Part shown: positions 22,311 through 45,853 of the stretch, one piece after another
Numbering within the stretch: the stretch's first letter is position 1
How the letters are laid out: each line of letters starts with the position of its first letter
Virus record (IMG/VR): IMGVR_UViG_3300045970_000794
Location: 124,001 to 188,000 of that record
DNA length: 64,000 bases
Direction: 5' to 3' (one strand)
The notes under the pieces: model-generated
Databases searched by the model: none
Seen by the model: the letters and a program-made list of their open reading frames with translations, nothing else
What the model was told of the DNA's origin: nothing
Position numbers and translations under genes: made by a program

Positions 22311-25300
22311 TTAAACATATTCATCTGTCATATAATCACTATATTTTGGTACATATGCCGTCCATCCATAACGTGATAATGGTCTTGGTGATGGTGTACC
22401 ACTTAATGGTGGTGTTGGTGTGTCAAATGTAGTTTGTTTTTGTATTACTTGTACTGGGTCGTTAACAATCGATGATTTTAATTTATTACCACTACTATCA
22501 AGTTGACGTGAAGTTCCATTTACTAGTGGACTATTATCCCAAAACTGACTCTTATTAGTAGCTGTTCTAATTTCCAAATGTAAATGTGGTCCAGCAGTTA
22601 ATCCACCAAATGAATTACCAGCTGATGTTTTTGGACATGTAGTTGGATTTCCACCAGATTCTGCAATTTTTTGAGATTTTGTTACTTTAAGGTTGGTTGG
22701 GTACTTATAATTCGCACTACCATCTATTTGGTCATAATTACTAATACCAGCGGATGTTAATATTGCACTATCGATAGCATTCAAATGCCCATAAAGACTA
22801 AATACTTTTTCACCATTAACATCATGTTCAATTATCATATGTAAACCAAACCCACTTCCAATTCCAATATAATAAATCGTTCCATCTGAAATTGTATGAA
22901 CATTTGTGTCAACTGGACAATAAATATCAATACCATAATGTGGTGATGTATCACTCGCACCCCTTAATCCAATTGGTGAACCAATTTTATGTTTAACATC
23001 AACTGGATATACAGCATCTAATGCAAGTACAGTATCAGATTTCATTTCACCATCTTTAATCCATTGGTCGTCTTTATTTGTTGCGGTTGATAATGTACCA
23101 CCAAATATACCAGTCAATTGAGATTTAGTATTTACACTATTATTAATATCACCAATAAAATCACTAAAAATAGTGGATGCATCTAATAATTGAGTCTTTT
23201 CTCTTCTAATTCTAACACCTTTAAATTTAGTTGTCATATGATTAGGAGTTATTGAATGACTAGTTTTAATAATCCAATATGCACCTCTAAACATAGGGAT
23301 ATTATTCAATTGGAAATACATCATTGGTTGAATCATAGCATTACCTAAACATTCAACTTCACACGAATATGACCTAACCGAATATAAATTAAATAAATTT
23401 TGACCAATATGTGATTTATTGGTTGGTGAACCATTTTGTGCAATATCATCAATTATTTTTAACCCTTCATCAGTTTCAGTAAATTCTTGTTGGTCTAATA
23501 ACACATCTTTAAAAATGCTTTGGTTTTCATTACCATAATTAACAACAAATACTGGAACAGCTGTTGCATTAGATTCAAAGAAATCATCTGGAACACCAGT
23601 ACCATCTTTAACACCAAAATTAAACCCATCACTTTTAAAATTTGAATCCGAAAAATCTAAATGTTGTGAACGTTGACCTAAATAAACACAAATAAATGAT
23701 GGTCCAACAGTCATATTAGCACCATTAGCAACTTTATTATATGAATATGGGGTGAACATGGCCCTTAACTGTTTTTCTTCCTTAAAATTAACAAATGAAG
23801 GTAATGGAATGAAATCCATATAATTATCACTTAATATTCTACCGAATACATCATAGATGCTTTGATTGTAATTACCAACAATTAAATTAGCAATTGCTGC
23901 TGGGTTAATAAGTAAATCATTAGAAATATCAACATAACTCCTAGTTATAAATTTAAAAGTATCAATTAAGTGAGTATTACTATTATTTGTCCTACCAGCA
24001 CCATTACATGTTTCCCATGGATAATCGCCATTATTACCAGAAATCCATTTATCAAAAATCGCTTTAATATTTCGATAAATGTTTAATTTTAACATATTAT
24101 TATCAATGTTAGCATCAGTAAGCATTGTTGTTTCATTTTCTTCTTTTTTCTCACCAAGCTCATTAAGTTGGGCGAAAAATGCTGATAAATAATTTTCTAA
24201 GTCTTTTAAATCAATACTAATTGGGTATCTATTATGGTAATTTGAATATGTTGCTGGAAACGCATCTTTATTTGGGTCATCATGGGTTTGATTCCATATT
24301 CTCCATGTTGAATTAACAATTAAAATTGGTTTCTCAATGAAATTCATTAGTAAAGTATTGGTATTAGCTGATAATGCTGGATTTTTTATTGTTGGGTTGG
24401 CTAATAAATTAGGTTCAATACTTGAAATAAATTCAGTTGTTGCCCATGAGTTAAATAAATTAATAAACTCTTGTTTAACTTGCCATGGTAAATTAATTAT
24501 AACTCTCTCAATAGGTGATGGTGCTTCATCATGTCTAATAGTTAATGGCGCATACGCACCAGCACCACCTGGTGTTATATAGGTAAATTCATTGTAAATT
24601 AATTTAAAATTGTTTTGTTCAGCAACTGTTAATGTTCTACCATCACTTAATAATTTGTTATTAGCAATAAATATAATAGGGTCTGGTGTTTGGCTATATC
24701 TCCAAAGTATTCCACCTAAAAATAATGCCCAAGCATATGGTGCTCTAATTAATCCAGCCCTCTCTGAAAATAAACCTCTAATATCGTCTGGTCTTAAAAT
24801 ACCAATATAATCACCATTAGTTTCATATTTAAAAAAATCAGTAAAATTTAAATTACTAGTTGTATTTGATATTAATCCTTGAAATGGTAGTGAATGCAAA
24901 AATAAAAAAGCTTTTGCTTGTGGACTAGTTTGATGAGTATAAAAATCACTACCAAATAATGGTTTATAGTCATATCTATTAGTAGATATAATATCATTCC
25001 AAGAACCATATACAATACCATTAAAATATGATGAATTAGTGCCACCAGAAGTTCGATTATAAATAGCATCTCTATATGGCCATATTGGTGCTGCTGACAT
25101 GCCAGCACCGCCAGTACCACCACCAGGATGATAAATATAACTAGCCTCAGCTGGTGTTGTTATAATTTCAAAATATGTTTTTTCAGATGAGAAAAAATTA
25201 TATAACCCATCGTAAGAATCTAATTTACCATTTAATTCATAATCAATATTATAAAAATCCTGTGTTTTAAATGTAAAACCATTTGGCCTCCAATTTGAAT

Positions 25301-27878
25301 TATCTGGGTTTGGATATACTTTTAATTTATTTAATTCATTAGCTTTCATACCAGTATCAAATTTATCACTTTTATACCCATTTTTTGTTAATATTTTTTC
25401 ATAAATCTCTTCATCATAGCCAATAGTACTAGCATATTTTTTATATTCATCCCATGGAAGAATTTTAACATAAGTAGCACCATCTAAATTTAATTCATCA
25501 GCATTGGCTCTAGTGTATTTAGTAATAGTGTTAGTTGGATTAGTACTTGAATAATTTGGTGTTACACAATTACCAAAAATAGTTGATTTTAATTCTAATT
25601 GTTTTAATTCATCTCTAGATTTTAAATTATTAAAACTTTCATAGAAATAATTACCAGTCACTATTTTTTTATCATCACCAACATTATTTATATTTTCACT
25701 TCTTAATGGAATGTAAACTCTATAATGATTAGTTATTGGTATTGTAGCTGCGTCTTTTATGAATGTGTATTCATAATAATTACTAGTGGGTGATTTATAT
25801 ATAACTTTTGGTCTAGAAGTTTGTGTTGGTTTATCAACAAGTGTTTCATTGTTTTGTGCTATAGCATCATTAATTAATAAATTAGCAGCTGCTGATGTAT
25901 TAACTGATTTATAATATCTATCTTTTATAAATGCTAACATTTTTACTGGTGCATATCTATAAAGATTTGTAGCTTCTAATGCGCCCATTGTCTTTATTTC
26001 AAAATCAGTTAAATTACGATTACTATAACCCATAAATATAAATGCTCGCTCTAATATCAACAACATCATATCCCAATATTTTTCACCTCTAATATCAGTA
26101 TTTAACGTTAAATTAAATGGATTATATGATTTAGCTAACATAGTATCCATTGGATTTACAGGGAACCAACCATCTTTTGCATTGGTTTGAGAATTGAGAT
26201 ATTCTTGGTCTTGTCTAGCTGATTTTAATATACCATCCAATAATTCATTAATAAATTGAACCTCAGTTATTTTATCATGATTAGCAATTGTACCTAACCA
26301 TTCTTCATTATTAGTGGCATCACTATATTTTGGAAATGGCAAAATATCTTTATCTTTTGGATTTGTATAATCAAAATATTTAGTGTGATTTTTAAGTGTA
26401 GCTGTTCTATCAGAACTTTTTTTAGCATTGTCAGCAACTTCACTTATTCGCTGTAATAATACCTCACAACTAGTTGTGAATATTTCAAAAATATTTTTAA
26501 TCGATGGAGTAAATGTTAATGCCCGTGTTACTTGGTCTTTAACTGCATCAGATACCTTTTTTTTATTTAATTTTAACGCTTCTAATGAATCGAACTCAGT
26601 TGTAACCACTTCTTTATCCGCTTCTCTTAAATCAAACACTAATAAATTATTAAATGTTTTTAATTCAGTTGATATATTAGCCAAAGCAATTGCATCAATA
26701 CCATTAATAGGACCACCAGATGGTAATAATAAATCATTATATTTAAGTTCGGTCATCCTTCCACCTCTTAATTTAAATAATGATGGTGTAAATTTAGATG
26801 ATGGTAATTGTGAGTTAATAGTAGTAATCGTATTTTCAATATCAGTATCGTATCTATCAACAATTTCATCAATTTCGCTTTGTTTACTACTACTAGGTTT
26901 TTTAATTACAATTAGCCCAGATACTGGTGACGATATTTCACTAGCATTACCAACACTTGTTTGAATATCATCATAAAATGATTTAGTCTCTGTTTTTATA
27001 TCATCAATAAGTGACAAAATTGAATTTAAAACACCATTTTGTGTTATGGATGGGTCAGAATCTGATAATTGTTGTATTGAAATGGTTAATTTATCAACTT
27101 GTCTAATCAATTCATTAATTGATATTATATGGTTTGAATCTCTGGTCGCACCAACATCAGATTTAATACTTTCTAATATTTTTTTACCAGCATCGGTTTC
27201 CTCTACACCTCTTAAATAACCAACTAACATGTCAGTTAAAAATGCATATGTATATCCAATAAAATCACATGATATTTCGAAATTACCAGTTTTTGAATTA
27301 AATTTTGATGTAAATTTAGTTAAATGAAGACAATATTGAACTTGCATTCCATAATAACCCTTTATTTTCAAACTAAATATTGGATATGGTAATTCAAAAA
27401 ATACTCTATATTGTGAATTCATACCAGCGGCAAATATACTACCACCTCTAACATCAATCATTTCAATATGAATCATTGGTGCGTATGATGTATTAAATTC
27501 AATATTAATACTAGTAATACCTAGTGCTTCAGCATTACCCCCACTTTGACTAAGTTTAGCATCAATGTCAGTATAATTAGTTGTTAATGAATTACGAACT
27601 CGACTATTACCATCAGTACCTACAACATTACTTTCAGAACCTTTAATGAAATTAACTGACATGCTTTTGTTATTACTATTATCAACATAACCACCACCAT
27701 TACCAGTTGCTAGAATAATTGTTCTAGCTTTTTTTGCAGTTGTTAATTCAACATTAATACATAATTCTTCCAATGGCATTGAATGTCTATCATATATTTG
27801 CCCTTTTTCATTTTCTAATTGGTTTGGGTCTACAATTAAAACCCTACCATATCCATTTGATAATAATTTATCTTCCAT
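22311..27878 (-). CDS. Baseplate hub (gp27/VgrG-like) fused to a C-terminal M23 peptidase
   Basis: N-terminal LGITSINIEFNTSYAPMIHIEMIDVRG, then YSCEVECLGNAMIQPMMYFQL and GAYWIIKTSHSIT (hub-like). M23 motifs HYGIDIY and HLHLEIR. Confidence 0.72.
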   Translation of the reverse strand: MEDKLLSNGYGRVLIVDPNQLENEKGQIYDRHSMPLEELCINVELTTAKKARTIILATGNGGGYVDNSNNKSMSVNFIKGSESNVVGTDGNSRVRNSLTTNYTDIDAKLSQSGGNAEALGITSINIEFNTSYAPMIHIEMIDVRGGSIFAAGMNSQYRVFFELPYPIFSLKIKGYYGMQVQYCLHLTKFTSKFNSKTGNFEISCDFIGYTYAFLTDMLVGYLRGVEETDAGKKILESIKSDVGATRDSNHIISINELIRQVDKLTISIQQLSDSDPSITQNGVLNSILSLIDDIKTETKSFYDDIQTSVGNASEISSPVSGLIVIKKPSSSKQSEIDEIVDRYDTDIENTITTINSQLPSSKFTPSLFKLRGGRMTELKYNDLLLPSGGPINGIDAIALANISTELKTFNNLLVFDLREADKEVVTTEFDSLEALKLNKKKVSDAVKDQVTRALTFTPSIKNIFEIFTTSCEVLLQRISEVADNAKKSSDRTATLKNHTKYFDYTNPKDKDILPFPKYSDATNNEEWLGTIANHDKITEVQFINELLDGILKSARQDQEYLNSQTNAKDGWFPVNPMDTMLAKSYNPFNLTLNTDIRGEKYWDMMLLILERAFIFMGYSNRNLTDFEIKTMGALEATNLYRYAPVKMLAFIKDRYYKSVNTSAAANLLINDAIAQNNETLVDKPTQTSRPKVIYKSPTSNYYEYTFIKDAATIPITNHYRVYIPLRSENINNVGDDKKIVTGNYFYESFNNLKSRDELKQLELKSTIFGNCVTPNYSSTNPTNTITKYTRANADELNLDGATYVKILPWDEYKKYASTIGYDEEIYEKILTKNGYKSDKFDTGMKANELNKLKVYPNPDNSNWRPNGFTFKTQDFYNIDYELNGKLDSYDGLYNFFSSEKTYFEIITTPAEASYIYHPGGGTGGAGMSAAPIWPYRDAIYNRTSGGTNSSYFNGIVYGSWNDIISTNRYDYKPLFGSDFYTHQTSPQAKAFLFLHSLPFQGLISNTTSNLNFTDFFKYETNGDYIGILRPDDIRGLFSERAGLIRAPYAWALFLGGILWRYSQTPDPIIFIANNKLLSDGRTLTVAEQNNFKLIYNEFTYITPGGAGAYAPLTIRHDEAPSPIERVIINLPWQVKQEFINLFNSWATTEFISSIEPNLLANPTIKNPALSANTNTLLMNFIEKPILIVNSTWRIWNQTHDDPNKDAFPATYSNYHNRYPISIDLKDLENYLSAFFAQLNELGEKKEENETTMLTDANIDNNMLKLNIYRNIKAIFDKWISGNNGDYPWETCNGAGRTNNSNTHLIDTFKFITRSYVDISNDLLINPAAIANLIVGNYNQSIYDVFGRILSDNYMDFIPLPSFVNFKEEKQLRAMFTPYSYNKVANGANMTVGPSFICVYLGQRSQHLDFSDSNFKSDGFNFGVKDGTGVPDDFFESNATAVPVFVVNYGNENQSIFKDVLLDQQEFTETDEGLKIIDDIAQNGSPTNKSHIGQNLFNLYSVRSYSCEVECLGNAMIQPMMYFQLNNIPMFRGAYWIIKTSHSITPNHMTTKFKGVRIRREKTQLLDASTIFSDFIGDINNSVNTKSQLTGIFGGTLSTATNKDDQWIKDGEMKSDTVLALDAVYPVDVKHKIGSPIGLRGASDTSPHYGIDIYCPVDTNVHTISDGTIYYIGIGSGFGLHMIIEHDVNGEKVFSLYGHLNAIDSAILTSAGISNYDQIDGSANYKYPTNLKVTKSQKIAESGGNPTTCPKTSAGNSFGGLTAGPHLHLEIRTATNKSQFWDNSPLVNGTSRQLDSSGNKLKSSIVNDPVQVIQKQTTFDTPTPPLSGTPSPRPLSRYGWTAYVPKYSDYMTDEYV

Positions 27879-32667: not shown

Positions 32668-35202
32668 TTACTTACTTACATTATTGTTAACTTTACCACC
32701 ACTTGAACCTTTTTTAACTTCAGTTTGAATCATTCTAGTTAAAGTCCTCATTAATACTGGATTATTCTTTAAAATATCTTCATCAAGTGTTTTACCGTCA
32801 TTACCAACTAATTCAATTCTACCAGTAATTTTAATATCATCAAATGAATGCTTTACATTAGAAGCTCCATTACTAGAATTCATTCTTTGGTCAATTGGTC
32901 CACTTGGCTTATGTCCAATAAGCGTATCTACTTTATCACTACTATCAATTGGTATTGGCATAGCAAAATCATGATACATTGGTCCATTACTACCATATTT
33001 TGTATTACCTAATGTTTGATTACGTAGTGTTTTATCTTTAGTCAATTGTTGATATGCACCAACGCCAGTACCAGCAATGCCACCAGCTAACATACCCCAT
33101 GGACCAAACATAGAAAGTGCGCTAGCACCTTTTAAAGTAGCACTATTAATACCCATTGCTTTACCACCGAAACTATCTGGGTCAAGATTACTACCAATTT
33201 CATCAGATAAAGCAGCACCAGCACCTAATCCAATAGTAGCACCAGCACCACGTAACATTGGATTTTTACCACCCCATGAATTAGCGAAACCACCCTTTGT
33301 TGCACCTTGAAACTTTGAACCAGCTGGTATTTTACCACTAAAATTTTGTTGTGCACCATTTTTATAATAACCAGCGTTAGTACTTTTTCTATACATACTA
33401 GGACCGCTAGTACCACCACCACCACTACTACCACCACCAGGCATACTAGGACCATATCCACCACCTCCACCACCACGAGCAACTGAATTAAATCCTATAC
33501 CCAATGCAACTCCATTTGCAATCCAAGTGGCAGCTTTTAATGCAGCCCATCCACCAAGAATTACACCTATTGATAATAATGGACTTTTAGCTAATTGGTC
33601 GATAGCCCATTTTAAACCATCACCAATTTTTTGAGCAACGCTAAATAGCTTCTCAAAACTGCCTTTTTTACCCCAGTCGGTGAATTTCTTCATCGCACCA
33701 CCTAAACCCTCAAAAATACCTTTTATTGCGGGTAATAATGCTGTTTTAAATGTGTTAACAATATTAGCCCATTGTTCATCAAAATCTTTAGACGATTCAG
33801 CTCTAGATGCTATTGATTCTTTTTCATCCTTATAAGCCTTAATTTGCTCTTTAGTCAACGTATTAATTAATTGTTCTGGTTTACCACCAACCGAAATAAC
33901 GAAACCTTTTTTATCTTTACTCCAAGTAGCGGTACTTTCAATAAACTCTTTAGCACCTTTGTCACCTCTAATTGTTGGATTAATATCCATATCAATTGAT
34001 TTAGTCATAGCCATTCTATGAGCAATCTCACTTAATTCTTCAAAAGGAATATTAGTCGCTTTAGCAACTTCTCTTAATCTACTTAATTCTAATGCTGATT
34101 TATCAACTTCACCAGTTACTCTATTAAATCTAAAGGTACCAGCAGTTGCTTCACCAATTGATTTAGTAAATGATTCCATATCATTTCTAGCTTCATACAT
34201 TAATCTAAATGGGTCAGCCAATTGAGCCCAAGCACCACCTAATGTTTGTAATGTAGCAGCCGCTTCAACAGCACCTTCTGGATTTGAAACTTGTGCAGCA
34301 AACCCAGCAATACTTTGCATATTGATTTTAAGTTTTTCGGAATAAGCAGTCATTTCAATCACACCACTAATTCCTTTCTTGAAATTATATGTTTGAGCTA
34401 ATTTAAGATTTTGTTGAAGGCTTTTCAATACTTTACTAGCATTCATACCCATTTTGTGAGCTAAATCAACGGTTTCTTGTACTTTATCTCTAGCACCTAC
34501 AACACTAATACCGAACATATCCATTGATGATGCCATTTGAGCTGCACCTTCAGCACCAAGAGTAGTACCCTCGGCCATTTCTGACATAGCAATTAAACCT
34601 TGTTGAGATAAAACAACCATTCTACCAATACTTTCACTGTAATTGGCTTGCATTTTAGCTAAATCAGCCGCAGAACTACCTAAAATATTAGTTTGTAAAG
34701 CCGCCTTTGTAATATTATTCCAATAATCCCTTGATGTTGATTTAAGGATACCCATATTAAGGGCCGACATTTTAATCGCTTTATCCTGTTCAACATACCA
34801 TTTCCAATTAGCCTTACCACTTTTAACTAAACTATTACCAGCGGCAACAATTAGATTAGTAGCATTTAATTGTGATGATATTAATTTAGATTTTTCTCGA
34901 TAAGTTGCAATATCTTCTTGTTGGAGCTTAATCTTTCGTTTAAGTAATATTAATTGCTGTTCATCCTGTACACTTAATGTATTATTATTAGCGAGTTTTT
35001 TATTTTCTAATCTAGCCTCTTCTTGTCTTAGTTTTAATATTTGTTTTTCAACAAAAGCAATACTAGCCGACAATTTATGCATATCTTTATAAACTTCCAC
35101 TGAGCCTTGAAGTGAACTTCTAACCTTTTCAGCGGCAGTTTGCATTGCCCGTTGATTTTGTAAATATTCCTCTAATTCTTTCGATAAAGTACGTCTAGCC
35201 AT
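32668..35202 (-). CDS. Tape measure protein
   Basis: 844-aa helical Ala-rich protein with an N-terminal coiled coil and a Gly-rich hydrophobic C-terminal half. Lies downstream of the tube and chaperone genes and upstream of the baseplate genes. Confidence 0.72.
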   Translation of the reverse strand: MARRTLSKELEEYLQNQRAMQTAAEKVRSSLQGSVEVYKDMHKLSASIAFVEKQILKLRQEEARLENKKLANNNTLSVQDEQQLILLKRKIKLQQEDIATYREKSKLISSQLNATNLIVAAGNSLVKSGKANWKWYVEQDKAIKMSALNMGILKSTSRDYWNNITKAALQTNILGSSAADLAKMQANYSESIGRMVVLSQQGLIAMSEMAEGTTLGAEGAAQMASSMDMFGISVVGARDKVQETVDLAHKMGMNASKVLKSLQQNLKLAQTYNFKKGISGVIEMTAYSEKLKINMQSIAGFAAQVSNPEGAVEAAATLQTLGGAWAQLADPFRLMYEARNDMESFTKSIGEATAGTFRFNRVTGEVDKSALELSRLREVAKATNIPFEELSEIAHRMAMTKSIDMDINPTIRGDKGAKEFIESTATWSKDKKGFVISVGGKPEQLINTLTKEQIKAYKDEKESIASRAESSKDFDEQWANIVNTFKTALLPAIKGIFEGLGGAMKKFTDWGKKGSFEKLFSVAQKIGDGLKWAIDQLAKSPLLSIGVILGGWAALKAATWIANGVALGIGFNSVARGGGGGGYGPSMPGGGSSGGGGTSGPSMYRKSTNAGYYKNGAQQNFSGKIPAGSKFQGATKGGFANSWGGKNPMLRGAGATIGLGAGAALSDEIGSNLDPDSFGGKAMGINSATLKGASALSMFGPWGMLAGGIAGTGVGAYQQLTKDKTLRNQTLGNTKYGSNGPMYHDFAMPIPIDSSDKVDTLIGHKPSGPIDQRMNSSNGASNVKHSFDDIKITGRIELVGNDGKTLDEDILKNNPVLMRTLTRMIQTEVKKGSSGGKVNNNVSK

Positions 35203-35204
35203 AA

Positions 35205-36356
35205 TTAATTAATATTTAAAATACTGATTTTAACAGCATTGCCGTTATTTAATGATTTTTTATAATTAAGTCTATCTTCACCTTGTGGTAATAGATAAGC
35301 TTTTACTGATAAATCTTCAGTATTTACTCTTGGTTTGAAGTTACTTCCATAAAATAAGGCAATTACTTCATCATTTGCATTATTAGTTACTGCGATGTAA
35401 TTACGTTTAGCATTTATAGTACCAACCAATGTCTTATCCTTAGCCAATAAATCAGTACCATTTTCATCTTTTATTGAATCATCAATTAATTTAAATTTGA
35501 TATTACCACCTGTTAAATATTCATTATGTCCTTCTTTTGATACTCTATCAACATGTGCACCATATTTCGATAAAATATCATCCATAACGGCATATCCTTT
35601 TGGGAAGAAGAAGAAATTATTCATATTAAATAATCCTGGTGTAAATTCAGCACTTTTAAGGATTTGCACTATTCTTTCATCCCATTTAAAAATTAAATTA
35701 CGCCTTTTGTTTCTAAGTTGAGCTTTAACTTCTTCAGATTTATTGAAAACTGCCTTTATTTCTTCATTATTTAAAGGTTCTGTTTTAACTTCTTCATAAT
35801 CGGTATCAATAGTATCATTTGGTTGATTTTCATCACCATTTGATGGTAATCTTCTAACTGATATATCACCATGGATTTCGAATGTTAGGAAATCTGGTAC
35901 TAATTTGTTTCTACCATATTTAATTTCTTTTGATTCTGGATTATAGTTGCTAACACTAAGGCAATTTAACCTACATGATGATGCGGTAACAACTATTGAA
36001 TTTTGAAAAGGAATACCAATTAATGTTTTAGGTTCTAAGATTGGTGAACCAGAGTTTTGTGTATAATCAACCGAAACAATAGCCAAAACTAGCATATTAT
36101 TCAATTCATCAACGTCAACAACAATAGTTCCGTAGGTTACAACGCTTTCTTCAATAATTTTATTTTCATTATCCGTTTTACCGAATAATAAAAGTAAGCC
36201 AGTATTAACCTTAGCATTTTTAAGTGATTTTGAAAATTCTTGTCCTAATTTTTCACTGAAATCCTTAATATTCTTCTTTTTAGCTTCATCAGCCTCAAAT
36301 ATGAAGAAATTTTCCATAATCTCACGCTGATTTTCGGTTATAATTACTCTTTTCAT
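35205..36356 (-). CDS. Hypothetical protein with an N-terminal KRVIITENQ motif
   Basis: 383 aa, own ATATTTAT motif upstream. Confidence 0.5.
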   Translation of the reverse strand: MKRVIITENQREIMENFFIFEADEAKKKNIKDFSEKLGQEFSKSLKNAKVNTGLLLLFGKTDNENKIIEESVVTYGTIVVDVDELNNMLVLAIVSVDYTQNSGSPILEPKTLIGIPFQNSIVVTASSCRLNCLSVSNYNPESKEIKYGRNKLVPDFLTFEIHGDISVRRLPSNGDENQPNDTIDTDYEEVKTEPLNNEEIKAVFNKSEEVKAQLRNKRRNLIFKWDERIVQILKSAEFTPGLFNMNNFFFFPKGYAVMDDILSKYGAHVDRVSKEGHNEYLTGGNIKFKLIDDSIKDENGTDLLAKDKTLVGTINAKRNYIAVTNNANDEVIALFYGSNFKPRVNTEDLSVKAYLLPQGEDRLNYKKSLNNGNAVKISILNIN

Positions 36357-36390: not shown

Positions 36391-36696
36391 TTATATTTTA
36401 CCAGAATATTCTTTAACTGCATTACCAGATATTTTACGAGTTCTTTTACCTTTACCAGTTTGTGATGACTGTGAATCCCTAGCTTCTTGCATTTTCTCTT
36501 TTTGCATAGTATTTTCACGCCTTAGAGTGTCAATAAAGAACCTACGTTCATATGTTGGTATGTTCATAGCATCATTATAAGTACAATTCATGTGTTTAAT
36601 CATCACATAAACCTCTTCTAATAACGGTATCTTAAAAGCTGAAGTCAGGCCAAAAAAAGTTGATGTTAAGGGGAAGAAAGGACTTAATGGACTCAC
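36391..36696 (-). CDS. Tail assembly chaperone second segment (gp51/GT-like); possible frameshift product
   Basis: CTYNDAMNIPTYERRFFI motif. Overlaps 36632..37837 in the +1 frame. The first ATG is only at 36603. Confidence 0.55.
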   Translation of the reverse strand: MSPLSPFFPLTSTFFGLTSAFKIPLLEEVYVMIKHMNCTYNDAMNIPTYERRFFIDTLRRENTMQKEKMQEARDSQSSQTGKGKRTRKISGNAVKEYSGKI

Positions 36697-37837
36697 CCCC
36701 AGGAGTCCTAATATCGATTCTTAAATCAATACCACTTTCAATTTCATCAACATATTTTCTAAACGGTCTGGAATCACCAACTCTCATAGATAATATTTCT
36801 TGGCGTATGAACTCTGGGTCCCTATTACCGTCAATTTCTAATATTTGTCTATCAAGTCTATGAGTTAATGAATTTGCGAACTCTAAATTCAATACATTTA
36901 ATTCATAATCTTCAATAGCAGCCAATTCTTCAATATCTCTAACGGTTAATAATCTAAATTTAATAACTCGGTGAGATTCTTCCAATGTATAAGTAAATAA
37001 TCCATGTGCATCTGGTTCAGCACCTAAATTTTTGATTTTCAATGTTGATAAATCAACTTCATAAACCCAAGGTTCACCAGTTACTTTATCTATTATTATT
37101 TGCCCTGTTGCTGGGTCAATAACATTAATTGGGTACATTACACCATAGCTAGTTGCTCTAAGCCATATCATAATAGCATTTCTGTCACCCATATGAAGGT
37201 CTTTTGGGTCAATATCTTCCAATATTTTTCTACGTAATAATGTTTCGAACCAATCACCACTTTCCAATATGTTTGGTGATGTTAAAAGGTTTTCATCTGA
37301 TGCGTTAAGATATGCAACTTTGAATCTATTTTTTCTAAACGGATATATTTTACCGTCTGATGGTATTGGAATTAAATCATATTGCACGTTTTGTGGTTCA
37401 ACAACTGGTCTATATCCAGCTGGTGCTGGTGTAGTTGCTGGCATTCTAACAGGGCTTGATGGTTGATAACTCTGTGGTGCTTGATATGATTCTTTATTTT
37501 GATATTCGGTTCTATTAGTCATTGTTTCTAGATTTTTACTTTGTTTCAAGTAATATTCACGTTCAGCATCGGCCGCTTTACCTAATTCTTCACGTCTAGC
37601 CATTGCTATTCTTTTTTCTTCAGCGAAGCGTGCTTCACGTTCAGCTAATTGTTGTTCAGTACGTCTACGCATTTCATCAGCAGCAGCTACTTCACCTGGT
37701 GGTGGTGTTACCATATTATCGTGCTTTTTAATCATTGCTTCTGCATTAGCTTTATTCATTGCTTCTGAATATGCATTAGCCGCTTCAATTTGTTCCTTAG
37801 TTGGAAAAACATTCAATTTGTTGGTATTTTCATCCAT
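36632..37837 (-). CDS. Baseplate hub assembly protein / tail chaperone (T4 gp26-like) with a long N-terminal extension
   Basis: LIPIPSDGKIY, YLNASDENLLTSPN, DRNAIMIWLRATSYG and PLNINFFWPD. Confidence 0.7.
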   Translation of the reverse strand: MDENTNKLNVFPTKEQIEAANAYSEAMNKANAEAMIKKHDNMVTPPPGEVAAADEMRRRTEQQLAEREARFAEEKRIAMARREELGKAADAEREYYLKQSKNLETMTNRTEYQNKESYQAPQSYQPSSPVRMPATTPAPAGYRPVVEPQNVQYDLIPIPSDGKIYPFRKNRFKVAYLNASDENLLTSPNILESGDWFETLLRRKILEDIDPKDLHMGDRNAIMIWLRATSYGVMYPINVIDPATGQIIIDKVTGEPWVYEVDLSTLKIKNLGAEPDAHGLFTYTLEESHRVIKFRLLTVRDIEELAAIEDYELNVLNLEFANSLTHRLDRQILEIDGNRDPEFIRQEILSMRVGDSRPFRKYVDEIESGIDLRIDIRTPGGESIKSFLPLNINFFWPDFSF

Positions 37838-38346: not shown

Positions 38347-39234
38347 TTATAAATTTAATTCCTTTTTTAGCCGTATAATTACGGATTCTGTGTTTTTATT
38401 AATGTCAGACTCCCAGAAACGTAATAATTTATAATTATGTTCTTCAGCTATTCTATTTTTACGAATATCATTACCAACAGTTTTAATTTGAATTGGGTAT
38501 ATTGGTATATTATGAATACTGTTTGGATTACAGTGGTGAAAATCCCCATCAACCTCAATTATAATATTTTTATTAATAATTAAAAAATCAAAAATAGCTG
38601 AACTAACTTGATATTGGTATTTATAGTCAATATTTTCAATTAACCCTAACTCATTTAATATATTTTGAAAATCGGACTCTAATTTAGTTTTTTTATTTCT
38701 ATAATTGTTTTGAATTAATCTAGTGATTAATCTTTTTGATTGTTTCTCACGTTCATCTGGATTAGCCCATCTTAACTCAGCCGCAGCTTGTATATTAATT
38801 TTATGCTCTTCACTTTTAGAAACACCTAATAATTTTTTTGAAATATTATTTCCACGCTCTGGATTAGCCATCACTTTATCAATATTATCTCTAACTCGTG
38901 AATCATCAATTGTAAGTCCCTTATTCCAGATTTGCAATTCACCAGTATCATGCATTTTTTTCTGTGTTTCGTGTGATTTACGATTAGCTTCTGGATTATG
39001 ACCCCAATTATTACTAACTCTAGATGCATGGCCACGAATATATTCAACAAATCCTTTTTCTATCGAGAGGAAATTAGGCTTTTCACCACATCCACATTTA
39101 CATGTTGGTGGAATACCATTTAAATTATAATCAATATATGTTTGCTCAGTATTAATATTGTGCTTTTGTGAACGATGTCTTCTTAATGAATCTAATGTCT
39201 CAAATTCTCTATTACATTCTTTACAATTTATCAT
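38347..39234 (-). mobile_element. Homing-endonuclease-like protein: C2H2 zinc finger, NUMOD3-like repeats and a Vsr/DUF559-type nuclease domain
   Basis: CKECNREFETLDSLRRHRSQKH, CKCGCG, KSEEHKINI and FDFLI...IIEVDGDFHH...NDIRKN...LLRFWE. Confidence 0.7.
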
Positions 39235-39357: not shown

Positions 39358-39846
39358 TCAAAATAAAAGTATTGCTCTATCAAATCTCAAAGTAGCGGTA
39401 ATATCTGCAATTGAATCATCGTCCATCGCTAAATCACCAAAGTTAACGTTTGTTAACATAGTACCATCAAGTAACCATTTTTCAATTACAACACCAGTTG
39501 GGTCAAGCATTTCAACTTCAACTTGTTTTTTGTAACCAGCGGCATAACCTTGACGGCCAGTGATTGATTCTGAATGAAGACGAACCCATTCCATGATTGC
39601 TTGTGATGCAGAAGGTCCAATAGGGTCACGGAAGGTAACATCTATAGTCGACCATCTAAATCTACCAATAACCCATGTTGATGTGTTAAGGAAAGGTATT
39701 TCAACTTCATCTTGTTCGATTGAAGGCCTAGCAGCGTTTTGTAACCACCATTCTTGAATTCCAAGTTCATCAGGAAATCTAATAAGCCATCTATTCTTTT
39801 TCTTAGGCTCATATGGTAGGGGCATTTTCATTAGTAAATCAGCCAT
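39358..39846 (-). CDS. Tail tube protein (T4 gp19-like)
   Basis: EPKKKNRWLIRF, AARPSIEQDEVEIPFLN, LDPTGVVIEKWLL and ATLRFDRA. Confidence 0.88.
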   Translation of the reverse strand: MADLLMKMPLPYEPKKKNRWLIRFPDELGIQEWWLQNAARPSIEQDEVEIPFLNTSTWVIGRFRWSTIDVTFRDPIGPSASQAIMEWVRLHSESITGRQGYAAGYKKQVEVEMLDPTGVVIEKWLLDGTMLTNVNFGDLAMDDDSIADITATLRFDRAILLF

Positions 39847-40019: not shown

Positions 40020-41651
40020 ATGGAAAAATTCAAATTAAATGATTTTATTCTAAAAGCTAAAACCATTCATGGTGATAAATATGATTACTCTATCACAAAA
40101 TATCGTAATATAACATCAAAAGTTAAAATAATATGTCCGATACATGGTGAGGTTGAATTAGTTGCTAGAGAACATCTTTATAATAAAATTGGATGTCCAA
40201 AATGTTATAGTAAATTCAATGATATTGAATTAGTAATAAATGAAGCTAATTTGATTCATGGTGATAAATATGATTATTCATTAGTTAATTATATTAATAA
40301 AAAAACTAAAGTTAAAATAATTTGCCCAATACATGGTGAATTTGAACAATTATTACATTCACATGTGAACAATAAACAAGGTTGTCCAAAATGTAGTGGT
40401 AATAAACGATTAACAACTAATGATTTTATTGAAAAAGCTAAAACTATTCATGGTACTAAATACGATTATTCATTAGTTGAATATGTTAATAATTTAACTA
40501 AAGTTAAAATTATATGTCCAATCCATGGTGAATTCGAACAATCACCATCAAATCATTTAATTGGTAGGGGTTGCAAAATATGTGGTAATATTAAATTATC
40601 AGAATTTAGAACTAAAACTAGTGATGAATTTATATCTGAGGCTAATAAAATTCATAATAATAAGTACATATATAATTTAACTGAATATATTGATTGTAAA
40701 AATAAAGTTAAAATAATATGCCCAGTACATGGCGAATTTGAACAAACACCAGATGCCCATATAAATGGTAAACAAGGTTGTCCGAAATGTTCAACAACCA
40801 ATAGCCAACCTGAAGAAGAAATTAATGATTTTATATTTTCATTGGGTATTGAAACTGTTAGACATGATAAAAAAATCCTTAATGGTAAAGAGTTAGATAT
40901 CCTAATACCATCACATAATATAGCTATCGAATTTGATGGACTATATTGGCATTCTGAATTATATGTATCATCTGATTATCATTTATCAAAAACAAATTTA
41001 TGTATAAAAAATGGTATTCAATTAATTCATATATTCGAGGATGAATGGATGTATAGAAAAGAAATAGTTAAAAGTAGATTAAAAAATATATTGGGGTTAA
41101 CCGAAAATAAGGTGTTTGCTAGGAAATGTGAGGTTAAAGAGATTCCACCCAAAATTGCAAAATCATTTCTTAACAATAATCATATTCAAGGATATACTAA
41201 TTCTAATATTAAATTAGGATTATACCACAATAATAATTTAGTTTCTGTTATGTTATTTAATAAACCAAGAAAAGGTATTGGAAATACGGTTGATGGTTAT
41301 GAATTAAGTAGGTTTGCTAGTAAATTAGATATTAATGTGCTTGGTGGTGCATCTAAATTATTTAAATACTTCATCAGTAATTATTCAGCTAATAATGTAA
41401 TAAGTTATGCTGATAGAAGATGGTCTAATGGTAATTTATATGATAAATTAGGTTTTACTTTAAAATCTATTAATAGACCAACGTATTGGTATATATTTAA
41501 TAATAAACGTAAACATAGATTATTATTTAGAAAACAATTATTAATTAAAGATGGTTATGATAAGAACTTAACTGAGCATAGTATAATGCTCAATCGTAAA
41601 ATTTTTAGAATATATGATTGTGGTACTAAAACATATATTCTAAAATTGTAA
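40020..41651 (+). mobile_element. Homing endonuclease with four DUF723-like zinc-ribbon repeats and a Hef-like PD-(D/E)xK C-terminus
   Basis: Four copies of HGxKYxY...KVKIICPxHGE...GCPxC, then ELDILIPSHNIAIEFDGLYWHS and IYDCG. Opposite orientation to the structural operon. Confidence 0.78.
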
Positions 41652-43027: not shown

Positions 43028-45853
43028 TTAAATGTTGTCGAAGCTAGCACCAGTAGGTGTTACAACGAATTCAATGTTAATATATTCAAGAGCTCTTGTT
43101 GGTTTGATGAAAATCTTACCATTAAGTTCATTTCTGTCGATTGATTCTGGGTCATTATCTACAGTTACTCTGAAATCTACAAGACCTCTAGCACTTCTAA
43201 TGTTTTCAAGAATTGGATTTACCAAGCTCAAGAATTTATTTCTCACAACTGAGTCATTTTGGTCGAAAAGTAACCTCAATGATACAGCAGAAATAAGTTT
43301 TCTTGTTTGTAATAACAATCTTCTAACATTAATTCTATTAAGAGCTGTTTCGTTAACTTGAAGAGTTTTGTTACCCCAGATTTTAACACCTTCAGTTGCA
43401 AATGTTGCAATTGGGTTAATACGTCCTTCGTACAATGTATCTCTTTCGTCAAGTGTAAGTTTTTTACGTGCTTTAATACAGCTAACATCACCTCTTTCAA
43501 TACCAGCAACTGAGAACCATGGGAAAGCAATATTATCAGTCAATGCAATATTTCTTAATACGTCTCTTGTTGGTGGTAACCAAATGTAAACGTTATTTTC
43601 AGTATCATTAACTTGAACCCATGGCCAGTAAGTACATGAGTAATTACTATCAAAAAAGTCAGTTAAATCAGCTACAATGTCTTCAACAGTATAAAGGCTA
43701 CCATTTGACATATCTGGTGTTGTTACAACATACAATGAGTCACGTCTGTCGTTTTCAACCATGTTGATTGTATCTTCAACTAAGTTTGTGTTGTTAACAG
43801 TATCAATACCTGGTGTTGCAAATACGTTAATATTTACAGCTTCTGGGTTAGAGAATGTTAAAACACCTTCTAAATATGCGTAGTAGTCGGAAGTAATTCC
43901 ATTATCACCATTGCTACTTACATAATCAGCAAAATTATCTAATGTTGTTCCTAAAAGTCCTCTAGTACCATTAATTGTGTAAGTATTAGTATTTGTTCTA
44001 CTTCTTCTGTAAATGTCCCATCCATCATAAGCACCATAAGGAGCCATAGTGAATTTACGAGCATATACTTTTTCATAATCAGTTCCTAAAACACCTAATT
44101 CACTTCTGAATTGAGCACTTCCACATTCAAATGTGTAAGAAATTGAGTTATCATCAACAGTAACACCAGTAGCAGCAATATCCATGTGGAAACCACTAGT
44201 TAATGCAGTCCATGCTGTTCCATTTCCATCTTCAGTACCTTTATAGTTGAATAATGGTTGGTCAATACCTTCAGTATCTGAAAGTCCTAAATAGAATTTA
44301 CGTTTATTTTCGTAGATTCCATATCTTGTTTTGTATAATATTGAAGGGTCAGCAACTGAAGTATTACCATTAGTTTGATAATCTCTTACTGGAACACCAA
44401 TCATACCAGCTGGGAAATACATAGATGTATTAATATCTGGATTCATTTCGATTAAAATATAATCTGATTTTGAAGGATATTCACCATCATAAGTACCAAT
44501 TTTACGTCCAACATAGTTTGTTAACGTTGGGTCCATACTACATTTTGTGAATTTTTCAATGATACTTGGTTTTGCATCAGTATCATAGAAACTTCTAACT
44601 AAAATGTCGAATTCTTTATCATCTGGTTTAATGTTAACGATAGAAATTTTGATTTCTTGGTTAGCATGGTTACCATCAGAAATTGTAATGAATCTAAATA
44701 AACTGAATATTTGATTACCAATTACCTGTGATACGGTCCAAGGTGTTGTTGCATAAGTGTATTGTGATTTGTAGAATTGGAAATCACTACTGTAGTCAAC
44801 TAAAGATAAATTAATACCTCTAACTTTTCCGTCAGCAACAAATTTATCAAGCATTGCATCGTAAACTTCTTCAGCAAAAACAGCTGTTTGTTTATCGAAA
44901 GCTTTTGTACCTAATGCATTTGTAATATAATTTTGATTTGTATTGTCTAATGAAATAGTATATGTGAATGCGCTTTGAACTGTTGATAATCCACTTAATA
45001 CAAATTCACCACTTGGGTCTAATAATGCATTACTTGAATTAGCAGCATCAATACTTACAGTATATGAACCACCACTTAATTCGAATAATAGATTTTCATT
45101 TCCATCATAAGTTGCTCTAGAACGTAATAACGCTACAACAGTATTTTGTACGTCTGCGTATGAAGTACCAGAATATAATACAACAGTACCGCTAACACTA
45201 CCACTGACTGATGATGCATCACCACTAATCTTAACCATGTCAGTAAATAAAATACCAACAAAGGCACTAGTTGATTCATTTGGTTTATAGAAGAATGTAG
45301 TACCAGTATATCCAGAACCTAATGCTAAATTAGCCATATTAGTTATTTCAATAGCAAACTCAGTATAAGTTGATGCACTAGTATTAAATAAACTTTCAAT
45401 ACCACTGAATGTTGGAGTTGTAGTAATACCAGTAACGGTTGAACCACTAACTCTAGTATAATCAATAGTAATACCAGTTGTTGTTGTTATACCAGTTGTT
45501 GAAGTATCTAACGCACCATTTAGTGTGATACCCCATGATTTGCCAGCATCATAACCAGAAAGACCAAGCACTCTAGTTACATATAACTGATTTGTTTGGC
45601 TTAAATATGATTTAGCGATATATGGAAGTTCGTATTGTGGGAAACCAGTGTCAATGAACTTTGAGGCATTTTGCCCGCCAAAGAAAGCTTTGAATTCATC
45701 ATAGTTTGAGATGAAAATTGGTTGGAATGCTGGTCCTTTAGTAGTTTCACCAACTAAGCCCAAGGTTGTTACCCCTACTTGTCTGGTTACGAAGGTTAAG
45801 TCTTTTTCAGATGTGTAAACACCTGGACTAACGAATACTCTATTTGATGCCAT
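43028..45853 (-). CDS. Contractile tail sheath protein (T4 gp18-like)
   Basis: FVSPGVYTSEKD, LVGETTKGPAFQP, INVFATPG, YWPWVQV, PWFSVAGIERG, WGNKTL, RINVRRLL and IKPTRALEYINIEF. Confidence 0.93.
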   Translation of the reverse strand: MASNRVFVSPGVYTSEKDLTFVTRQVGVTTLGLVGETTKGPAFQPIFISNYDEFKAFFGGQNASKFIDTGFPQYELPYIAKSYLSQTNQLYVTRVLGLSGYDAGKSWGITLNGALDTSTTGITTTTGITIDYTRVSGSTVTGITTTPTFSGIESLFNTSASTYTEFAIEITNMANLALGSGYTGTTFFYKPNESTSAFVGILFTDMVKISGDASSVSGSVSGTVVLYSGTSYADVQNTVVALLRSRATYDGNENLLFELSGGSYTVSIDAANSSNALLDPSGEFVLSGLSTVQSAFTYTISLDNTNQNYITNALGTKAFDKQTAVFAEEVYDAMLDKFVADGKVRGINLSLVDYSSDFQFYKSQYTYATTPWTVSQVIGNQIFSLFRFITISDGNHANQEIKISIVNIKPDDKEFDILVRSFYDTDAKPSIIEKFTKCSMDPTLTNYVGRKIGTYDGEYPSKSDYILIEMNPDINTSMYFPAGMIGVPVRDYQTNGNTSVADPSILYKTRYGIYENKRKFYLGLSDTEGIDQPLFNYKGTEDGNGTAWTALTSGFHMDIAATGVTVDDNSISYTFECGSAQFRSELGVLGTDYEKVYARKFTMAPYGAYDGWDIYRRSRTNTNTYTINGTRGLLGTTLDNFADYVSSNGDNGITSDYYAYLEGVLTFSNPEAVNINVFATPGIDTVNNTNLVEDTINMVENDRRDSLYVVTTPDMSNGSLYTVEDIVADLTDFFDSNYSCTYWPWVQVNDTENNVYIWLPPTRDVLRNIALTDNIAFPWFSVAGIERGDVSCIKARKKLTLDERDTLYEGRINPIATFATEGVKIWGNKTLQVNETALNRINVRRLLLQTRKLISAVSLRLLFDQNDSVVRNKFLSLVNPILENIRSARGLVDFRVTVDNDPESIDRNELNGKIFIKPTRALEYINIEFVVTPTGASFDNI

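Follow-up and report, generated by a model that had tools for sequence, protein, structure and literature searches.

A giant phage uses a conserved +1 frameshift site in a gp26/gp51-family gene to encode a short and a long form of a predicted tail assembly chaperone

The gene for a predicted tail assembly chaperone of the T4 gp26/gp51 family in a jumbo phage probably gives rise to a short and a long product when some ribosomes slip one base forward on a run of seven U's. This conclusion is held with fairly high confidence, although it rests on DNA sequence alone, and it links the lambda G/GT frameshift to the T4 proteins gp26 and gp51, which were thought to be the exception. The locus lies within a stretch of 64,000 nucleotides (here called the window; positions 124,001 to 188,000 of IMG/VR record IMGVR_UViG_3300045970_000794), which is part of a 362,102-bp phage genome with direct terminal repeats and 30% G+C. 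The features are included in Table 1. The 401-aa gene ends AAC TTT TTT TGG CCT GAC TTC AGC TTT TAA, a few codons after the T7 tract. The +1 frame after the tract reads GLTSAFKIPLLEEVYVM... and is open for 86 more codons, with GTG as codon 16 and ATG as codon 17, whereas the -1 frame is open for only 10 nt before and 14 nt after the frame-0 stop. The original prediction described this anatomy correctly and proposed a G/GT-like pair made by +1 or -2 slippage at the T tract, a reading that our results support with the refinements given below. A contig from a second pond metagenome covers positions 36602-37668 with no differences and no gaps, and an assembly or homopolymer error is therefore excluded.

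Table 1. Position, strand and description of the features of the recoded locus and the surrounding tail module (window coordinates).
Feature	Coordinates	Strand	Description and supporting matches
Frame-0 gene	36632..37837	-	401 aa, short ('G-like') product; residues 1-146 low-complexity N-terminal region, residues 147-401 gp26/gp51-family domain (PF12322)
Frame-0 stop	36632..36634	-	TAA
Shift site	36647..36658	-	TTT TTT T GG CCT; Phe-tRNA inferred to slip +1 (UUU to UUU), next codon read GGC
Slippery run	36652..36658	-	U7
+1-frame ORF	36391..36696	-	Open +1 frame, including the part before the tract
+1-frame extension	36391..36651	-	'T-like' module, 86 codons plus stop (TAA, 36391-36393); 481-aa long product with the upstream part
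Lineage-specific start region	36601..36618	-	GTG (36606) and ATG (36603), preceded by GAAGAGG (36612-36618), which looks like a Shine-Dalgarno site
Candidate stimulatory element	36672..36679	-	TTTCTTCC, 21 nt upstream of the tract
Tape-measure-like gene	32668..35202	-	844 aa; phrog_28 tail length tape measure, E 4e-7
ORF of unknown function	35205..36356	-	383 aa; no Pfam or PHROG match
Homing-endonuclease-like gene	38347..39234	-	Between the tube gene and the 401-aa gene
Tail tube gene (gp19-like)	39358..39846	-	phrog_4542 tail tube, E 5e-27; PF06841 weak
Second homing endonuclease gene	40020..41651	+	Between sheath and tube
Tail sheath gene	43028..45853	-	phrog_23 tail sheath, E 5e-60

To determine whether the site is conserved, we retrieved 80 loci related to the 401-aa protein (34-58% identity to the window's protein), 160 more related to its homologues in Flavobacterium phage immuto and Microcystis phage Mel-JY01, and four further cultured phages. 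Every related locus with an intact gene end (80 loci of the jumbo clade, 153 loci of the Flavobacterium-phage and Microcystis-phage clades, and 6 cultured phages) needs the same +1 shift, and none has an in-frame fusion or lacks the +1 ORF. UUU_UUU_U or UUU_Y lies 2-5 codons before the stop in all of these roughly 240 loci. The 12-mer TTTTTTTGGCCT is identical in 80 of 80 loci of the window's own clade of jumbo phages and in 109 of the 153 loci of the other two clades, the rest of which have close variants. In 90 representative genes from the three clades, TTC makes up 20% of the Phe codons and CCT 33% of the Pro codons elsewhere in the gene, yet at the site the first Phe codon is always TTT and the Pro codon is always CCT. 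The T of CCT is the second base of the invariant +1-frame Leu codon. The first +1 codons, GGC and CTG, are rare in this genome at 3.6 and 0.64 per 1000.

The coding frame switches exactly at the tract. The mean nucleotide entropy by codon phase is 0.50/0.36/0.93 upstream, where the frame-0 third position varies most, and 1.23/0.66/0.53 downstream, where the +1 third position varies most. Pairwise amino acid identity downstream is 0.65 in the +1 frame against 0.43 and 0.39 in the other two. The +1 peptide, GLTSEYKxPLLEEIYxCxxHL...MPTYERRFF, is conserved from its first residue in 64 distinct relatives, and the G and L after the junction are invariant. The fused reading has one non-standard step.

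These data bear on the possibility that the downstream ORF is a separate gene, translated from the GTG or ATG as a protein of about 70 aa with an incidental overlap. In favor of this, GAAGAGG lies 5-8 nt upstream of the GTG/ATG and GenBank records of relatives annotate small separate ORFs. However, the 15 codons before the GTG are conserved as protein in all relatives, starting right at the tract, and periodicity is already in the +1 frame from +7. Most relatives have Ile or Cys codons in place of the GTG and ATG, and at least nine have no ATG, GTG or TTG in the +1 frame from the last upstream stop to +70. Eighteen have a +1 stop at -29, so an upstream start is also excluded. The conserved stretch GLTSEYKxPLLEEIYxC can therefore be reached only by a shift. 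The GAAGAGG is probably a by-product of the conserved Leu-Leu-Glu-Glu codons and not the main way into the +1 ORF, and the ATG lies inside a confidently predicted helix. Two separate genes are thus very unlikely, although a separate short product made in addition to the shift cannot be excluded in this one phage.

Variants of the site are informative as to the mechanism. These include TTT CTT TGG CCT (33 loci), TTT CTA TGG CCT (three separate contigs), CTT TTT TGG, TTT TTT TAC, TTT CTT TAC and TTT TTT TTC, as well as TTC TTT CGT in Bacillus phage HSE3 and Streptococcus phage GXN1, TTT TTT CAC in Bacillus phage SP-15, and TTT TTT TGG AAT in Rhodothermus phage RM378. The only common feature is a UUU codon followed by a pyrimidine, which lets peptidyl-tRNA-Phe re-pair one base forward (UUU to UUY). 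With the slip at the first UUU, the junction stays Phe-Phe-Gly-Leu in both T7 and TTT CTT T phages. A -2 shift on U7, as in phage Mu, would be as good a re-pairing of tRNA-Phe in the window and would reach the same frame, giving ...NFFFGLTS..., but TTT CTA TGG, TTT CTT TGG and TTC TTT CGT offer no cognate -2 re-pairing while they do allow +1 at UUU_C, making this alternative highly improbable.

Transcriptional slippage, in which RNA polymerase stutters on T7 and makes some mRNAs with one U fewer, would give the same protein outcome. The T7 homopolymer is widely kept, and the related Kyanoviridae use a T6-T8 run to reach the -1 frame, so that runs of T serve both directions, as a polymerase that stutters both ways could also produce. 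However, the TTT CTT T, TTT CTA T and TTC TTT C sites leave runs of only 3 T, too short for stuttering (efficient slippage in bacteria appears usually to need 8-9 or more A/T), yet the +1 ORF stays intact and conserved. Additionally, the Kyanoviridae site is a canonical ribosomal -1 heptamer, U_UUU_UUN. A -2 shift and polymerase stuttering both need the homopolymer, so neither can explain these variants. We therefore favor a ribosomal +1 shift, while transcriptional slippage is unlikely but remains possible for the T7-bearing phages.

None of the usual +1 stimulators is visible. The A-site codon (UUU or UGG) is not a stop, no Shine-Dalgarno-like sequence lies 3 nt upstream in the window (the upstream sequence is CTT AAC ATC AAC), and no stable or covarying RNA structure was found. 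The MFE z-score is -0.22, and RNAalifold found only a trivial 5-pair helix without covariation. The sequence TTTCTTCC is fixed at the nucleotide level in the jumbo clade, being present in 60 of 61 distinct sequences although CTT is only 18% of Leu codons elsewhere. A pairing found by hand between TTTCTTC and GARGARR at the Glu-Glu codons 40 nt downstream has 96% of cells paired against 52-78% when slid, but it shows no covariation and is not predicted by RNAalifold. An upstream shift at the TTT_C of TTTCTTCC was considered and rejected, as variation at the CCN third position is silent in frame 0 but changes the residue in the +1 frame.

The shared domain belongs to the T4 gp26/gp51 family and is not a lambda-G homologue. 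PF12322 is matched by 32 of 39 aligned family members (best E 3.6e-16), although the window's own protein scores 17.9 bits, below the 24.5 cut-off, and the protein also matches phrog_150 'baseplate hub' (E 1e-5). The AlphaFold2 model (pLDDT 92; the two frames were folded separately) matches BFVD entries named 'baseplate hub assembly protein, T4-like' (E 3.2e-14 to 6.4e-9) and the hub subunit of Bacillus phage SP-15 (E 5.5e-18), and the best match overall is an uncharacterised phage protein (E 3e-25). In a comparison against 48,161 solved chains with VIA-align, rank 1 was 3fgx, an uncharacterised Bacillus protein (Z 5.8), and ranks 2 and 3 were the tail assembly chaperones YqbN (Z 5.1) and HK97 TAC (Z 4.7), all on residues 1-94. 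A second subdomain (residues about 130-225) matched 5ir0, 3pes and the phage p2 ORF12 tape measure chaperone. The Z values are only 2.3-5.8, below the level considered reliable, so this similarity is suggestive and not proof, and Foldseek against PDB found no match with E at or below 0.001.

The extension is predicted to fold into three helices (4-21, 25-30 and 33-65) with pLDDT 89-97 for residues 1-60, followed by a basic tail with a conserved KG-R...SG-ALK motif. Foldseek of the extension against BFVD gave only weak hits, among them a 53-aa Prochlorococcus phage 'Gp51' and proteins labelled as tail chaperones. Megablast of the region and tblastn of the small ORF against cultured phages found nothing, as did BLASTP of the 401-aa protein against T4 gp26. 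Profile searches with the G-domain, extension and fused profiles against T4-type ORFs gave only sub-significant hits, although gp51 C-termini dominated the top of the extension list, and whole-protein hhalign to gp51 and gp26 gave collinear alignments with low probability. The domain-level comparisons were decisive. The profile of the +1 extensions aligns directly to the C-terminal tail of T4 gp51 (score 26.9, P 6e-5, 0 of 300 column shuffles reach it). It also matches the profile of the cyanophage 'mini-gp51' (prob 97%, E 1e-10), which in turn matches the T4 gp51 tail (prob 96%, E 2e-9), with both alignments starting at the Phe-Phe and 0 of 100 shuffles reaching the score in each.

The best explanation is that the 401-aa gene and the ORF after it form one recoded gene of the G/GT type. 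It is inferred that most ribosomes read frame 0 and stop, and that a fraction slip while peptidyl-tRNA-Phe sits on one of the two UUU codons, then read GGC CUG ACU... to give a long form with the junction ...NFFGLTS.... By analogy with lambda G/GT and by homology with T4 gp26/gp51, the shared part would act on the tape measure and hub during tail initiation and the extension would add a second contact, and neither form is expected in the virion. The order sheath, tube, gp26-like gene, small ORF and tape measure is seen in relatives, and the order tube, overlapping pair and tape measure is seen in six cultured relatives. The original prediction placed the gene upstream of the tape measure gene in a T4-like phage, but the 383-aa ORF lies between them, and 'T4-like' holds only loosely for a jumbo phage with T4-type tail genes. 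It is about as likely as not that all myoviruses with T4-type tails follow the lambda G/GT logic, with the long form made by +1 frameshifting at UUU_Y (this phage and the Flavobacterium, Microcystis, Bacillus, Streptococcus and Rhodothermus phages), by -1 frameshifting at U_UUU_UUN (cyanophage-type Kyanoviridae), or from a duplicated full-length gene (T4 gp51 beside gp26), which would remove T4's status as the exception. The locus gives a testable function for gp51 and gp26, and it provides a natural series of +1 and -1 sites on U-runs for studying what sets the direction of slippage. The GenBank records inspected annotate the downstream piece as a separate hypothetical gene or not at all. The locus corrects the annotation of many phage genomes, where small 'hypothetical' or 'gp51' ORFs would be extensions rather than genes. 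No paper linking gp26/gp51 to the tail chaperone frameshift was found, although the literature searched was incomplete and prior description elsewhere cannot be excluded.

Programmed frameshifting in tail chaperone genes is one of the most conserved recoding events in phages. In the lambda G/GT system (Levin, Hendrix and Casjens 1993; Xu, Hendrix and Duda 2004; reviewed in PMC5009743), as here, two overlapping ORFs lie between the tail tube and tape measure genes, a slippery site sits a few codons before the stop of the first, the second has no conserved start, and a short and a long product (here inferred) share the N-terminal part. The locus differs in that the direction is +1 on UUU_UUU_U rather than -1 on an X_XXY_YYZ heptamer. 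Additionally, the shared part is a 255-aa PF12322 domain, more than twice the size of the roughly 100-residue solved chaperones it weakly resembles and without sequence similarity to them, it carries a 146-aa N-terminal region, and homing endonuclease genes and the 383-aa ORF interrupt the module. The RF2 (prfB) +1 frameshift, like the slip inferred here, involves slippage of a P-site tRNA onto an overlapping cognate or near-cognate codon, and the TTT CTT T variant even contains CUU_U as in prfB, but there is no in-frame stop in the A site and no Shine-Dalgarno-like element 3 nt upstream in the window.

In cyanophages, gp51 is only about 20% of the length of T4 gp51 and matches its C-terminus (Sullivan et al. 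2010, PMC3037559). In cyanophages and marine T4-like phages, this small ORF lies right after the gp26-like gene and is annotated as a separate gene, and the term 'frameshift' does not occur in that paper. In Methylophilales phage Melnitz and 69 related contigs, it lies in the -1 frame directly behind the U_UUU_UUN heptamer at the end of the gp26-like gene and is conserved upstream of its annotated ATG. T4, with its gp26 and gp51 ('hub assembly chaperones', PMC3004832), has been listed as the exception to the G-T frameshift (PMC5009743). The original prediction noted that they are separate genes, and this is the key comparison. T4 gp26 (208 aa) ends ...KEFFELL, three residues after the equivalent Phe-Phe, like the short form, whereas the Pfam domain of gp51 ends at the matching place but gp51 continues in frame for about 48 residues, like the long form. 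T4 makes the two forms from two paralogous genes on opposite strands without recoding, whereas the window has a single gene plus a shift.

Two homing-endonuclease-like genes are inserted into the tail module. The gene inserted between sheath and tube matches HNH phrog_559 with an E-value of 1e-146, while the gene inserted between tube and chaperone has a C2H2 zinc finger plus DUF559. An ORF of 383 aa with no Pfam or PHROG match is found between the chaperone extension and the tape measure gene, whereas the cultured relatives have the tape measure gene next, with at most one small ORF before it (Mel-JY01). Downstream of the tape measure gene, an 1855-aa protein carries a peptidase/endolysin-like segment near residue 1630 and may be a tail-associated lysin.

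Locations of features in the window, elsewhere in the phage genome (G000:C1) and in Kyanoviridae-type contigs (L262-L342)
Location	Strand	Feature
window 40020-41651	+	Homing-endonuclease-like gene
window 38347-39234	-	Homing-endonuclease-like gene
window 36672-36679 and 36612-36618	-	TTTCTTCC and the complementary Glu-Glu codons
window 36391-36470	-	Basic tail of the chaperone extension
window 35205-36356	-	383-aa ORF
window 22311-27878	-	1855-aa protein
G000:C1:24310-77051 (outside the window)		tRNA genes
G000:C1:71732-71807 (outside the window)		tRNA with anticodon CUA
L262:2474-3366 and L263-L342		gp26-like gene and mini 'gp51 / baseplate hub assembly' ORF

The sequence TTTCTTCC upstream of the slip site is fixed at synonymous positions in 60 of 61 relatives, and although it is complementary to the Glu-Glu codons downstream, no covariation was found. 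The extension ends in a basic tail with a motif (KG-R...SG-ALK...G-IP) that is conserved across the jumbo clade but absent from the other clades, and this tail is predicted to be disordered (pLDDT 55-60). The genome carries 40 tRNA genes, which include three tRNA-Phe(GAA), two tRNA-Trp(CCA), tRNA-Gly(GCC), and a tRNA with anticodon CUA that looks like an amber suppressor. The ORFs in the window read normally under table 11.

In the Kyanoviridae-type contigs, the gp26-like gene ends at a U_UUU_UUN heptamer, and the annotated mini 'gp51 / baseplate hub assembly' ORF is in the -1 frame and is conserved upstream of its ATG. This arrangement looks like an unannotated -1 programmed frameshift in cyanophage-type T4-like phages.
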